DNA of 64,000 nucleotides from Podarcis erhardii (GCA_964252035.1 OZ176214.1), one strand, 5' to 3'. Counted from the stretch's first letter, positions 3,409 to 28,697 are shown. Program-made: numbers and translations. Notes: generated by a model not told the origin, from the sequence alone.

Positions 3409-3547
3409 CAGGCATAGGCAAACTCGGCCCTCCAGATGTTTTTGGGACTACAATTCCCATATCATCCCTGACCATTGGTCCTGTTAGCTAGGGATGATGG
3501 GAGTTGTAGGCCAAAAACATCTGGAGGGCCAAGTTTGCCTATGCCTG
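3409..3547. mobile_element. 139-bp palindromic hAT-like MITE
   Basis: TIRs CAGGCATAGGCAAACT / AGTTTGCCTATGCCTG and a fold-back interior. Degenerate relatives lie at about 8957-9090, 18103-18226, 20325-20457, 26680-26830, 29690-29810 and 54363-54470. Confidence 0.85.
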
Positions 3548-13721: not shown

Positions 13722-14285
13722 TCACTGGATGCGGTGAATTCTCTTTTTGGTATGTGGGCTGTGGGCCGCCTCGTGGCCATTATCCTTCTCAAAGGCCATG
13801 GTCATATTTATTGCTTCCATCATTGTGATGTCATCTTTTGCCAGCAGCTTGTGGCGGAGACGGCTGTCTCTCAGGCCACTGATTAACCTTTCAAGAAGTC
13901 GTTCCTCGATGTCAGTGAATTGGCAATACATCACAATCACCCGGAGTGCTCTGATGTATTCACTTGCTGACTCTTGCGCTTGTTGCTCTCTGTGTGCAAA
14001 GTCGTAGTGGTGGTGGTTCTTAGTTGGCTGAGGCGCAAGGTGTCTTGTCATAGCCTGTGTCAGCTCATTGAAAGTGCATACCTCTATGTCCCTGGGTGCC
14101 ATCAGACCTTCCAGTAGAGTGATGGCAGAACTTCCCAGCACCGTCAGTAACACATCCACCTTGTCTGCCTCCCTAGTGAAGCCTTTCAGTTGGACATAGC
14201 TCCTTATTCGGTGGAGCCACTGCGGCCATTCTGCAGGACGGCTCATATCAAAGTCCAGTGGCTGCCGACTATGACTGGTAGCCAT
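13722..14285 (-). pseudogene. Gypsy Gag N-terminal/capsid region (187-aa open stretch)
   Basis: FDMSRPAEWPQWLHRIRSYVQLKG...YDFAHREQQAQESASEYIRALR...ERLISGLRDSRLRHKLL. A tandem zinc knuckle CASCRENHERQTC-RFQDTT-CRYCGKTGHIGQIF follows in another frame at about 13500-13600. Confidence 0.85.
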
Positions 14286-23690: not shown

Positions 23691-24535
23691 TAATAATAAT
23701 AATAATAATAATAATAAATTTTATTTATATCCCGCCCTCCCCAGCCGAAGCCGGGCTCAGGGCGGCTAACAACACTAAAACAGTACAGCATTATAAAACA
23801 GTATAAAAATGGATTAAAATGAATTAAAATCAAAATTGATGGCAACCATAAACTAAAGTTTGTAAAGATTGCCAGAGGAGGGAGTCAGGCTGCGCCCTGA
23901 CCAAAGGCCAGGTGGAACAGCTCTGTCTTGCAGGCCCTGCGGAAAGATGTCAAGTCCTGCAGGGCCCTTGTCTCTTGTGAGAGAGCGTTCCACCAGGTTG
24001 GAGCCGCAGCCGAAAAAGCCCTGGCTCTAGTTGAGGCCAGCCTAACCTCTCTGTGGCTTGGGACCTTCAAGATGTTTTTATTTGAAGATCGTAAGTTCCT
24101 CTGTGGGGCATACCAGGAGAGGCGGTCCCGTAGGTACGAGGGCCCTAGGCCGTATAGGGCTTTGAAGGTTAAAACCAGCACCTTAAACCTGATCCTGTAC
24201 TCCACCGGGAGCCAGTGCAGCTGGTATAGCACCGGATGAATGTGATCTCTAAGCGAAGACCCCGTAAGGAGTCTCGCTGCAGCATTTTGCACCCGCTGGA
24301 GTTTCTGGGTCAGTCTCAAGGGCAGCCCCACGTAGAGCGAGTTACAATAATCCAGTCTGGAGGTGACCGTCGCGTGGATCACAGTGGCTAGGTCAGGGCG
24401 TGAGAGGTAAGGAGCCAACTGCTTAGCTTGGCGGAGATGAAAGAATGCCGCCTTTGTTATAGCTGCAATCTGCGCCTCCATGGAGAGGGAGGTATCGAAG
24501 ATTACACCCAAACTCTTAACGGACGGTGCTGGCAC
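23691..24535 (-). mobile_element. L2 LINE, 5'-truncated, young subfamily B with an uninterrupted ORF2 C-terminus
   Basis: 216-aa ORF 23885-24535: SLGVIFDTSLSME...VTSRLDYCNSLYVGLP...QNAAARLL...LHWLPVEYRIRFK...WWNAL...KTELF. A (TTA)n tail sits at 23691-23717. Confidence 0.95.
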
Positions 24536-25835
24536 TAACTAACTTTCAGAAGTCTCAGCATGTCTCTTACAGAGTTGGTGTGTCTTTTTTTAAATTTTTA
24601 TTAAACCGGTCTAGCCTTGGAGTCTAGCTTAGCTGGGGTTTGAGATCCTCCTTGCCCGTTCTTTTAAAAGGGAAATGAATTGCTGCCATTTCATTTTTCT
24701 AATGCCTTTCCAATAGATCTAACAGTCACTCATGTTGCAATGTTGCAGTTGTTATCTTGGAAGCTTGCTACAGGCAAAACAAGCAAACAAAACCTGGGAC
24801 TAGCTATGAAATCCAATGGTACATGCTTGAGGTATACAGCCCAGGAAGAATACATTAAAATATGAATGTTTGGCAATTACCTTCTTATTGTTTCATATGA
24901 GCTACTAGAAAACCATGTTCTGCTTGTGCCAGGGAATTGAAGAGCCGTGATTCAGTTCACCTTCTGACAGTTAATAGATGCTGAAACATGACTGTGAGAG
25001 AAAGCAAAACCCAGTCAGCATTCAGCTTCTCATTTAGGAAGCTGTTGTTTTCATTTGGAGGAGCCTATAGGAACTGCTTATCAGCCAACCTAGTCAAACA
25101 AAGGGCAGACAGAGCTGTCATCCCCATACACGGAGAACTATGTTTGTCAGCATTCAGCAACTTGCTGTCCATATGGGAGTGATGGATATTCTCTCAAAAA
25201 CTGCCTCATCTATATGAATCAGTGGAGAAATCTATGCATGCACCATTTGGGGGCATGTAAATCAAGCTATATATTTGAAGAAGGAAGGCTCACAAAGAGG
25301 GCCTGGAAAAAATGAACCAGTGACCGACTTGACAAAATGTAGGTCCTTAAATCATAAGTAGAAAAACAGTCAAGCTGAGAACTTCTTTATCCCCCAAATG
25401 TCACGAGAGTGGAGTGATATGGCTGGGTGGACTATGCCTTTTTTGAATGTTCTTGTCAGATCCTGCATCCACATGGAAGTGTATTCCATTTTCTCGAAGT
25501 TTCCCTAACTGTTGATTTCTGCATTGTATGTGAGTTTCCACGTGACATAAAAGTCATTCTAGTGCAGGTTTAGAGGACTGGACCATTTCATGGAAGATAA
25601 GGCTATCAGTCTATACTAACCATTATGGCTATGCTCTGTCTTCATGGTTGGAGGCAAGGTGCTGGAAAGCACAGGAGGGGAGAGTGCCCTTATGCTTGAG
25701 TTCTTATGGTGTTCCCATGGGCATCTGATTTTCCACTGTGAGAACCAGATGCTGGGCTAGATGGGCCATTGGCATGACCCAGCAAGCTTTTCTTATGTGC
25801 TTATGTTCTGTCATACATTATTTAAGTGTCTAGTA

Positions 25836-26595
25836 CCGGGGTCAGCAAACATTTTCATCAGGGGGCTGGTCCACTGTCCCTCAGACCTTGTGGAGGGCTG
25901 GACTATATTTTGAAAAATATAAATACCTTGCAAGCCGGTCCCACAGCTGCCTCCGGATCTGGAGGAGGAACGCACTCTGCACACACTCAGGAGCACGTCT
26001 TGGAACCACCTGCTCACTGGTTGTTGATGAGCAGCAGCCGCTCCATTGGAACGTCCCCGTGGAGCTCCCAGGTGGCATGCACCATAGACTGCGGCCCATC
26101 ATCCAAGGCCAGGTCGGCGGGCAGGCCACGCACATGGAGCACCAGGAAGGCAGCACACAGCTCACCCTCCAGCTGCTCCAGTGCAGCCACCGAGCGCGCC
26201 ACCAGCAGCAGCGCCGAGCCAAGTGCCAGGCTCAGGGCCAGCAGACACGCCAAGCTCCAGTTGAAGCCCCACGATACGCCCGTCATGATGACCATGGCGT
26301 GGCCCAGACCCGCCGCCCGCCCGCTCACCTCTCCATCCATGGCCGCACCAGGTTTACCTCAGCCGCGGGTGGCGAGGCTTCGGATTGGCTGCAGGAAGTT
26401 CCTGCAGCCAATCCAAAGCTGTGCCAGCGTCGCTGCCCGCCCATAAGCCATGCCAGCATCGCGGAAGTCATTCCCCGTGCGGTGAGGTGTCTGCAGCATA
26501 TGGGGACTGACTGAGCGGACGACAAGGTCCGTGGGCCGGATTTAAGAGCCTGGAGGGCTGCATCCAGCCCCCGGGCCTTAGTTTGCCGACCCCTG
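25836..26595. mobile_element. Non-autonomous hAT element (760 bp) carrying a captured host-gene fragment
   Basis: TIRs CCGGGGTCAGCAAAC / GTTTGCCGACCCCTG. Perfect 8-bp TSD GTCTAGTA at 25828-35 and 26596-603. GC/CpG-rich interior. Confidence 0.92.
26014..26340 (-). pseudogene. SPR: Captured sepiapterin reductase exon 1 (decayed)
   Basis: GLGHAMVIMTGVSWGFNWSLACLLA...ARSVAALEQLEGEL...PADL...ERLLLINN aligns without gaps to recalled human SPR [25 protein letters not shown]...ARNDEALRQLEAEL...PADL...QRLLLINN, with 47/97 identities by hand count. Kozak context GCCATGG. Confidence 0.9.
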
Positions 26596-28697
26596 GTCTA
26601 GTACAGAGGAAGGATGCCACGCCTCTGTCACTTTAAGCATTTCACCATCTGCAAAACATATGAACTGGAACATAGACCCATTTGTTTGCATCAAGCTTCC
26701 CCAGCCTGATGCCCTACATGTGTTTTGGGCTCCAGTTTCCATCAGCCCCAGTGAACAGCTTGGCAAATGACCAGTGATGATGGGAGGTCTAGTTGAAAAC
26801 ATATTTATGGCACTAGACTGGAGATGGTGGCTTGCATAAAAGTTGGTTGAAGTACACTGGGTAGATATTTCACTCTTTTGGCCAACTTCTTGGAAACACT
26901 CAGGAGGCAGGCCCATGTTTGATTCACTGAGAAGCATATTCCTTTGATGCATGAATACTGGTGGAAGCCACATCAATCTTCCTTTGACTCTTATATCATG
27001 ACCTGCTTCTTTACTTTTCATATAAAAATATATTATAAAGCAAAGCAAAGAACCAGTGGGTAGTCTCTGCCTTCTGTCCTGTATCTATTTGCTCTCTGGC
27101 GAGTATGGAAAGAAAACCTCTTGGGATTATCTGGTGTGAAGCAGATCTCTTTTAGAGTCATATTCTTAACCCAGTGAAGAGAATTACAGAACTTTGAAAC
27201 AACTGCTTCAAAAAAGTTTTTGCTTCTTCACATGAGCGCCTGTCTTGTTGCAATCAATTTTTAAAGCCCCCCCCTCAAAAGAAACCCAAGAGTCCTTTAT
27301 CAGTGATTGAAAGAGATTCAATTTGGCCTCGTCTAATTCCTTATCTAATTATTTGATGTGCCGTGCAGCTTGAAAGCTAATTGACATTGTGTCATTTTCA
27401 GTTTCTTACAACAGATGCACAGACAAGCCGCCCTTCCCATTTTGGCATCTTCCTTGAGTCACTTTGCTGGAGAAATAAGTAATCTAAATTTAATTGAGTG
27501 CATTATTGCCAGGACTATGAGACCTTTGCACACTATTAGTATAGACACGAATGTAACGAATCGTTTCCCTCCTGAGGATTTAGCAGAGGTGCAAGTGGGA
27601 CCAGAGGGTTTTCCAGTACAGTAAATCCCTTCCTTTTCTTGAAAGGAAATTAATATCTGTTTGGAATATCTACTAAGCCACAGCACATAATTTCATTACT
27701 TATGGAATTACAATTCTTAACCTGATATCAATCTGAAGGCTCAGGGCAGGTAATAATATTTTAAAACACTTAAAGCGGGGTGCGGTGGGGGGGATGGACA
27801 TCATTGAAATGTGAAATACATGAAATTTTATATGGGAACTTTATCTTCCAGACTGAAGGCTGCATTGTTTCATGGGTAACTTTCATGACCCACACACCCG
27901 CCAACATTTCTCCAATGAAAATAGGGATGGCCTATTCCATAATCATTATTTTACTATTTATACCACATGCATATGACTGGGTTGCCCCAGCCACTCTGGG
28001 GGACCTCCAACATATATAAAAACATAATAAAACATTATGGTAGGAGAGGGAAGGCCAGTTACAAGACTTCAGCTAGATTGGAGGGGAGGGGAACTGGAGG
28101 AGATAAGGGTTGTGGAGGAAAATTGAACAGGCCTGAATACCTAGGCCTTTAGGGGATGCCACACAGAGAAAGGAGGTTTAGCCCTCACTCTTTTGCAGGA
28201 GGCTGTCTTCAGGTTCTCTCCCTAAGCCCCATTGGGTGGAGGCAAAAATAAGTAGCTGCATCCCAGGTTGAGGCAGCATTGGACACCTCCACTGAAATTG
28301 CAACAGTAATGGTAGCCTCTGAATCATCACAGAGTCAGTAAATTTTATCCTCAACATGGTGGGCCAGATGATCACAGCAGTCTTCCATTGCCCCCAGATG
28401 CTTGCCTTGACCAGCAGCTAAGAACAAGTTTCAAACAACCAGCAAAACCTCTGCTGGGTGCTATTACTTGAGGATGCAGCAGACGCAGAAAAACAGGACT
28501 TCTTTGCTGCATTTATTGTCACATGATAGGTGCAATTATGTGCTTTAACCAAGGCTTAGTCACCTTGGAACAGGAACCTATGCCACTTGAGCTCTAGTGA
28601 CCACCTAGCCTACTTCATTGGCCATAGTTCATTAGAATTTCAGGGAGCATTGCAGGCCTTGCAGCATCAGAGACCACACTCAGGAATTGATCAACAG

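Follow-up and report, generated by a model that had tools for sequence, protein, structure and literature searches.

How does the beginning of a host gene come to lie between the two ends of a DNA transposon, and what has become of it since? The question is raised by 760 bp (positions 25836-26595) of a 64,000-nucleotide stretch of the lizard Podarcis erhardii (GCA_964252035.1 OZ176214.1), the whole of which we refer to as the window. In these 760 bp a first, sequence-only reading had recognized a hAT transposon carrying the 5' end of SPR, the gene for sepiapterin reductase. The observation is confirmed: this is a 760-bp non-autonomous hAT element with SPR cargo. It very probably belongs to a multicopy family of such elements in lacertid lizards, for which we use the name Pack-hAT, and is an old copy that is fixed and decaying.

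The borders of the element leave little to interpretation. The repeat finder returned an identical 8-bp direct repeat, GTCTAGTA, immediately outside both ends, i.e., a target site duplication (TSD), and the pattern search for inverted ends paired CCGGGGTCAGCAAAC on the left with CAGGGGTCGGCAAAC on the right (read on the minus strand) as terminal inverted repeats (TIRs) matching at 13 of 15 positions. The order over 25828-26603 is thus GTCTAGTA, CCGGGGTCAGCAAAC ... GTTTGCCGACCCCTG, GTCTAGTA, in agreement with the hAT-type TIRs and perfect TSD that had been described. An 8-bp TSD is the length expected of a hAT, and both the sister copies and the cargo-free miniature inverted-repeat transposable elements (MITEs) of the same family have one of their own. 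The right TIR begins with the hAT motif YARNG, and the left one departs from it by a single motif change (CCGGG); the family consensus of the left TIR begins CAGGGG, and the consensus of loose contig ends, built from hundreds of contigs, is ...GTCTAGAC followed by CA. The hAT target preference (nTnnnnAn / GTnnnnAC) is seen in the consensus of the flank preceding the TIR in hundreds of family members (GTCTAGAC in sequencing run X1, GTCTAAAC in X4 and X5), and the TSDs found in the family are GTCTAGTA, GTCTGGGG, xTGTGGAC, GTTTATGC and GTTTAGAG. The transposon ends, which the sequence-only reading had put at 75-85 bp, are 90 bp on the left and 76 bp on the right and fit that estimate. Its CpG-rich core was borne out as well, with a GC content of 0.63-0.67 and a CpG observed/expected ratio of 0.6-0.7, against 0.41-0.42 and 0.14-0.21 in the flanks. 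No further copy of the element or of its TIR family was found elsewhere in the window.

The identity of the cargo is equally clear. The minus-strand open reading frame (ORF) at 26017-26340 (108 aa) matched human and mouse SPR in the PDB, as expected from the first reading (best E value 7e-16, human). The alignment to human SPR runs ungapped over 101 residues from the N-terminal part of the protein, 48 of them identical (counted from the alignment midline), and ends ...LLLINN; the identity to SPR of Podarcis muralis is 76 of 108 residues. When P. muralis SPR was compared with the whole window by tblastn, exon 1 was the only part that appeared (26340-26020, 71% identity, E 6e-28), and exons 2 and 3 are absent both from the element, where the first reading had already seen no exon 2, and from the rest of the window. 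Their absence rules out that we are looking at the native SPR locus.

We compared the interior with the native SPR loci of P. muralis, P. lilfordi, Lacerta agilis and Zootoca vivipara, and found 81-83% identity to all four from -7 to +417 relative to the ATG. The native lacertid junction of exon 1 and intron 1 is AACAACGCCG / GTGAGCGGG, and in the multiple alignment the window has AACAA--CCA / GTGAGCAGG at the same place, with a deletion of 2 bp. Protein similarity ends at INN, that is, at the end of exon 1 and followed by donor-like DNA, as had been proposed; from there ca. 90 bp of intron 1 continue to ...GGACCGGCTTGCA, after which the sequence switches abruptly to the transposon end. Since intron sequence has been retained, the cargo must have been copied from unspliced sequence. 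A processed retrocopy can be rejected, given the ca. 90 bp of intron 1 behind an intact GTGAGC donor and the lack of exon 2 and of a poly(A), and the earlier preference for capture as DNA over an mRNA retrocopy was well placed. The sequence-only reading had also counted ca. 170 bp of upstream sequence and 5' untranslated region (UTR) as cargo, and this part of its account has to be given up. The native loci align through the intron-1 flank but not through the upstream one, where homology to all four of them ends after gcggcc (-7), continuing weakly perhaps to ca. -25. The element lacks the native upstream region and the conserved GCGTAAAAGCGCACG box that belongs to it. The native gene of P. 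lilfordi lies on OX395134.1, away from the Pack copies, which were located on OX395128.1, OX395135.1 and OX395137.1. Host sequence between TIR ends, with the parental copy elsewhere, is what characterizes the elements known as Pack-TIRs. The parts of the window copy are listed in Table 1.

Table 1. Parts of the Pack-hAT copy in the Podarcis erhardii window, with positions counted from the first letter of the 64,000-nucleotide stretch.
Feature	Position	Strand	Basis
Left TSD GTCTAGTA	25828-25835		Same 8-mer at 26596-26603
Left TIR CCGGGGTCAGCAAAC	25836-25850	+	Inverted-end pattern search; consensus of loose-end contigs
Left hAT backbone, subterminal, 90 bp	25836-25925		Common to cargo-free MITEs
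Cargo/backbone junction	25926-25930		
SPR intron 1, first ca. 90 bp	25926-26017	-	Aligns to native intron 1 of Lacerta agilis, P. muralis and P. lilfordi, up to +417
Splice donor GTGAGC	26012-26017	-	Reverse complement of these positions
SPR exon 1 coding sequence	26018-26340	-	ATG at 26338-26340; 81-83% DNA identity to native loci
SPR 5' leader, last ca. 7 bp (gcggcc...)	26341-26347	-	Weak homology may extend to ca. 26365
Non-SPR filler in all Pack copies	26348-26369		Unmatched in native SPR upstream; depth at 26363 about that of the cargo
Near-perfect palindrome with two inverted CCAAT boxes	26370-26426		28-nt arms, 86% complementary
CpG-rich promoter-like filler (ACTTCCGCG, GGGCGGG)	26427-26519		In 4/4 aligned copies; unmatched in native SPR loci
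Right hAT backbone, 76 bp, with right TIR at 26581-26595	ca. 26520-26595		Aligns to right ends of cargo-free MITEs
Right TSD GTCTAGTA	26596-26603		Same 8-mer as left

SPR is not the only foreign DNA in the interior. P. lilfordi DNA contains two MITEs of this family that have no cargo (L001:43603-43920 and L006:29387-29635, with TSDs GTTTATGC and GTTTAGAG of their own). The left backbone of the window copy aligns to L006:29387-29463 (93.5%) and to L001:43841-43920, and at 26555 the consensus of the loose-end contigs is that of the MITE backbone. With the extent of the backbone set by these cargo-free elements, ca. 170 bp of non-SPR DNA (26348-26519) are left in the interior besides SPR. At positions 26363, 26434 and 26444 this filler was covered by 19-31 contigs per position, with a depth and a contig count equal to those of the SPR cargo, and it is thus specific to the Pack family. 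The palindrome in its midst was found as well inside an unrelated repeat (L006:14236-14285), has very high depth in all runs and shows loose ends at 26376. The interior is, in short, a mosaic from at least three sources. As a separate observation, the high-copy repeat that shares the palindrome (L006:14140-14340) was also seen in RNA contigs.

Did the chimera move as such, or was host DNA filled into a resident MITE once and in place? The sequence-only reading had left both open. We aligned the window copy with three copies from P. lilfordi, located on three chromosomes of which none is that of the native gene, and all four (4/4) agree in both SPR junctions and in the filler. One of the P. lilfordi copies is flanked by the TSD GTCTGGGG, another by xTGTGGAC (7/8), and the third is truncated at one end; the Pack copy in L001 lacks 63 bp around the palindrome. 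The sharing of junctions by all copies shows that there was a single capture. In-situ gap filling is the commonest route to single-copy animal Pack-TIRs (PMC8277862) and would have left a unique, immobile chimera, but it is refuted here by many copies with the same junctions, different TSDs and different chromosomes, and we give it practically no credence. The chimera has moved as a unit.

The number of copies was estimated from Logan contigs of four runs mapped to positions 24836-27595 of the window at a likeness of at least 80%. In the runs of three organisms the single-copy depth was 58, ca. 10 and ca. 16, and the depth over the SPR cargo was 1530-2280, 194-344 and 512-1282, with ca. 28-31 distinct contigs at typical positions. 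This is 19-39 times the single-copy depth and translates into ca. 20-40 copies per genome in the three species, an approximate figure given that it sums contig depths at that likeness and includes the native gene. Distinct TSDs and cargo-free relatives, both of which the sequence-only reading had proposed to look for, accompany this count. Over the left backbone the depth rose to ca. 47,000 times single copy, so that the carrier MITE family must be extremely abundant.

The insertion is also old. Run X1, with zero differences to the window flanks, is from the window's own species. In two other species contigs cross from the flank into the first 32 bp or the last 29 bp of the element, at the same site and with 97-98.5% identity, which makes this an orthologous insertion, older than their split. 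This insertion therefore predates the split of at least three species, and no empty-site joint was seen in the mapped contigs of the runs. A maximum-likelihood tree of the region from -20 to +330 unites the four lacertid Pack copies in a single clade (97/98 support) that falls among the native Podarcis, Lacerta and Zootoca genes, and annotated copies of the SPR fragment are found in Zootoca too. There was one capture, around or before the radiation of these lacertids. An exhaustive protein search with the ORF, made without a profile, had as its best matches short proteins of P. muralis, P. lilfordi and Zootoca annotated as "uncharacterized" or "SPR-like", one of which (P0003) runs through the intron piece into the MITE end, like the window ORF at 25881-26222; a word-indexed search with the ORF alone gave 4 hits and a profile search reached further. 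The surroundings of the window copy are repetitive on both sides (25480-25835 and 26604-26860), with a depth of up to thousands of times single copy, and the left flank resembles a short interspersed element. Apparently the hAT inserted into older repeats or next to them.

The long residence has left its mark on the cargo. Compared with the consensus of the four native genes, it differs at 65 of 348 positions, and 39 of these differences (60%) are changes of CpG to TpG or CpA; divergence outside CpG is 9%. In all, 31% of the CpG positions have decayed in the window cargo versus 0-4% in the native genes. The changes in the protein are nearly all of the CpG-transition type (R>W/H/C, A>V/T, P>L), and the glycine-rich cofactor motif has gone from GASRGFG to GVSWGFN. 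A Pfam search of the ORF found no adh_short domain and indeed no domain at all, the ORF being too decayed for it. A functional SPR, which belongs to the SDR family, requires the full Rossmann fold with a motif of the TGxxxGxG type and catalytic residues from later exons, and here there is only exon 1, with the cofactor motif lost. The pattern of changes and the loss of the motif indicate that the open frame is a by-product of GC richness and that the copy is dead as a coding sequence. It is without SPR function, and its CpGs have decayed as would be expected of methylated, unconstrained DNA. One RNA run did provide a contig over 26020-26315, 82% identical to the window. It has the native-type letter at every listed position and is thus native SPR mRNA. 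In the same run the filler and the ends of the element were touched only by low-depth contigs from other copies.

The capture of SPR is not confined to lacertids. Among the matches of the ORF protein search were also fragments of SPR exon 1 from Rhineura floridana and Phrynocephalus forsythii. In Rhineura (CM057606.1) there is a 996-bp hAT-like element (L007:2400-3395), with TIRs CAGTGGCGTACCAAG / CTAGGTACGCCACTG and a perfect 8-bp TSD TATAAAAC, that has been annotated as "sepiapterin reductase-like" (113 aa); its cargo comes from the animal's own SPR and extends from -17 through exon 1 and ca. 700 bp of intron 1. A MITE-like TIR sequence, which the native intron 1 has as well, lies ca. 50 bp before the end of this cargo. 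There is also a second protein with the Rhineura-type N-terminus. The Phrynocephalus element (JAPFRF010000010.1, L008:2264-3293) is 1030 bp long and hAT-like, with TIRs CAGTGTTTTTCAAC... and a perfect TSD CATTAAGG. Its cargo, again from the SPR of its own species, begins at -8, takes in exon 1 and most of intron 1 and reaches 42 bp into exon 2; internally, 135 bp have been deleted at a GGCT microhomology, and there is a tandem duplication. At least 15 SPR-fragment proteins are annotated in this species, on at least 10 scaffolds. In the tree the Rhineura and Phrynocephalus cargos each group with the native SPR of their own species (100/100 and 99/98 support), and this grouping, together with the unrelated TIRs, shows that the capture events were independent. 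Three unrelated hAT-like families (in Lacertidae, in Rhineura, an amphisbaenian, and in Phrynocephalus, an agamid) have thus each taken the 5' end of SPR, which was amplified in at least two of them.

How did the gene fragment get into the lacertid element? We envisage a MITE-like non-autonomous hAT that would have lost its interior and gained a mosaic of host DNA instead. The main captured piece is ca. 425 bp of lacertid SPR, which begin near the transcription start (7 to ca. 25 bp before the ATG) and comprise all of exon 1 and ca. 90 bp of intron 1. Most likely, a double-strand gap at a hAT copy was repaired with template switching, as in the favoured model for Pack-TIRs and Pack-MULEs (PMC8277862). 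The extremely GC-rich CpG-island core of SPR exon 1 would have been one ectopic template and two other sequences would have been further ones, very GC-rich DNA close to transcription starts presumably being preferred. The resulting chimera was then transposed in trans to ca. 20-40 places, acquiring an 8-bp TSD of its own at each. Some points weigh against this account: the capture mechanism is one that we infer, with no clear microhomology readable at the junctions and the exact progenitor backbone lacking; the copy number is approximate, for the reasons given above; and an autonomous hAT with these ends that could have been the source of transposase (BED, DDE/RNase H, hATC) was not identified, none being seen in the window or in the fetched loci.

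A carrier as abundant as this one (left-end depth ca. 47,000 times single copy) could also suggest a composite origin, in which two hAT copies flanking the native SPR exon 1 moved together as a macro-transposon and the inner ends were lost later, and the MITE-like TIR close to where the Rhineura cargo ends would suit such a scheme. However, in none of the four native lacertid loci is there a TIR of this family near -7 or +417, inner TIRs are absent from the interior of the element, and an interior made of three parts fits template switching better. We therefore consider a composite origin improbable.

The starting points of the cargos bear on a different issue, the nature of the template. Rather than drawing on arbitrary ectopic duplex DNA, the capture step (and only this step) could have been linked to transcription, the template being the nascent unspliced transcript or the DNA of an R-loop just downstream of the transcription start site (TSS). 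Relative to the ATG, the three independent captures begin at -7 to ca. -25 in the lacertids, at -17 in Rhineura and at -8 in Phrynocephalus, and each of them extends into intron 1. Moreover, a conserved TATA-like box (GCGTAAAAGCGCACG) at -39 in the lacertids and at -49 in Rhineura gives a predicted TSS at ca. -9 and ca. -19, near the cargo starts. On the other hand, the TSS of SPR is a prediction only, the native exon 1 shows a weak GC skew (+0.05 to +0.25) and with it no obvious propensity to form R-loops, there is no poly(A) or other hallmark of RNA at the 3' junction, and the boundaries of the lacertid and Phrynocephalus cargos are fuzzy. On balance we find a transcription-linked template rather unlikely, and prefer template switching to ectopic duplex DNA. 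The native SPR exon 1 has a GC content of 80-84%, and the end of the lacertid cargo coincides with the end of the island. A more far-reaching idea, which we consider less likely than not, is that squamate hATs repeatedly capture the stretch just downstream of the TSS in a transcription-coupled manner (from nascent RNA or an R-loop template), perhaps helped by an advantage of elements with CpG-island exon cassettes.

Dispersed first exons might be expected to have consequences for other genes. The window copy keeps the ATG, an open frame and the GTGAGC donor and, like its sister copies, can be used as an alternative first exon in gene models. Models in which SPR exon 1 is spliced to unrelated exons were found in Zootoca (P0040), P. 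lilfordi (P0047, P0002 and P0009) and Phrynocephalus (P0007/P0030/P0049), several of them with the SPR donor. In an "eL27-like" protein of Zootoca an N-terminus consisting of the SPR fragment precedes a Ribosomal_L27e domain, and in a Rhineura-like protein the SPR fragment is joined to a weak match to a seven-transmembrane receptor. These chimeric models, the output of several annotation pipelines, are either real transcripts or annotation artefacts. They are also what could speak for a co-option of the family, with dispersed copies of SPR exon 1 acting on the native gene through antisense or small RNAs or supplying first exons under selection, since models in Zootoca, P. lilfordi and Phrynocephalus and the Rhineura-like protein all use the captured exon and donor, and SPR is the orange colour-morph locus of wall lizards, where the morph goes with cis-regulatory variation just upstream of the gene (PMC6431182). 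Yet the copies decay like neutral methylated DNA, over the SPR cargo the RNA run showed nothing but native-type letters, and the chimeric models may be products of ab initio prediction, so that co-option seems to us very improbable. Nothing of the morph-controlling upstream region of SPR was found in the element.

Other features of the window can be described briefly. TIR-like matches at 3409/3533, considered as a possible further copy, were rejected because they belong to a different MITE. This one is 139 bp long (3409-3547), has the TIR CAGGCATAGGCAAAC and lies inside a larger inverted repeat (gcattaaaac / gttttaatgc). On the minus strand at 13722-14285 there is a 187-aa ORF with a match to retrotransposon gag / PNMA (Pfam E 9.5e-06), the sole Pfam match among the long ORFs of the window, and a GC-richer block (0.53-0.58) at 23885-24535 contains a minus-strand ORF of 216 aa with no Pfam match.

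Gene fragments inside cut-and-paste transposons are familiar from the Pack-MULEs of rice and other plants, which carry GC-rich pieces of genes, often several per element, have been amplified and give rise to chimeric transcripts. The lacertid family resembles them in the capture of a GC-rich gene fragment and the amplification of the chimera. It differs in being a hAT with an 8-bp TSD and a 15-nt TIR, whereas Pack-MULEs are plant elements of the Mutator type with long TIRs and TSDs of 9-11 bp. Very similar ends, like CAGGGGTCGGCAAAC, and an 8-bp TSD are found in hAT-Charlie-type MITEs (e.g., the mammalian MER58), putative relatives of the carrier that have no host gene fragment.

In animals a survey to compare with is that of Tan et al. 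(2021), in which 370 Pack-TIRs were described from 100 animal genomes, 208 of them hATs and four of them multicopy (three from a frog, one from an alligator); the single lizard genome in the survey had 0 Pack-TIRs and almost no TIR transposable elements annotated (PMC8277862). One of its elements, Pack-hAT-N8_XT of Xenopus tropicalis, which carries 291 bp of the CAPSL 5'UTR (PMC8277862), is like ours a non-autonomous hAT with a 5' gene fragment as its interior, copies on different chromosomes with distinct TSDs and a GC-rich parental sequence. Unlike it, the lacertid element has a squamate host and contains a whole first exon with the start of an intron, plus two further mosaic pieces, and its copies number ca. 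20-40 as opposed to 3-5 in the frog. The closest functional analogue is HelibatN3 of vespertilionid bats, in which the promoter of NUBPL, six codons with the start and a splice donor form a mobile 5' gene cassette that can serve as an exon trap or as an alternative first exon (PMC4778049). HelibatN3, however, is a rolling-circle element that captured its cargo by read-through, exists in thousands of copies and has an active captured promoter, whereas the SPR promoter was not captured here and any such activity of the lacertid element is putative. In the literature that we searched, neither Pack-hATs of lizards nor Podarcis SPR fragments had been described.

Multicopy cut-and-paste transposons that carry genes are well known in plants and rare in animals, and the lacertid elements are a clear vertebrate family of ca. 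30 copies, a new multicopy animal Pack-TIR older than several species splits. As the cargo derives from the orange-morph gene, dispersed copies of SPR exon 1 matter for read mapping, annotation and expression studies of that locus, and many spurious "SPR-like" or chimeric gene models follow from them. More unexpected is that two other squamate lineages have captured the 5' end of their own SPR with different hATs, starting almost at the same nucleotide. Should this convergence hold generally, the ways in which DNA transposons acquire host sequence would become open to test, and capture anchored at the TSS, if true, would turn these transposons into systematic shufflers of reptilian first exons.
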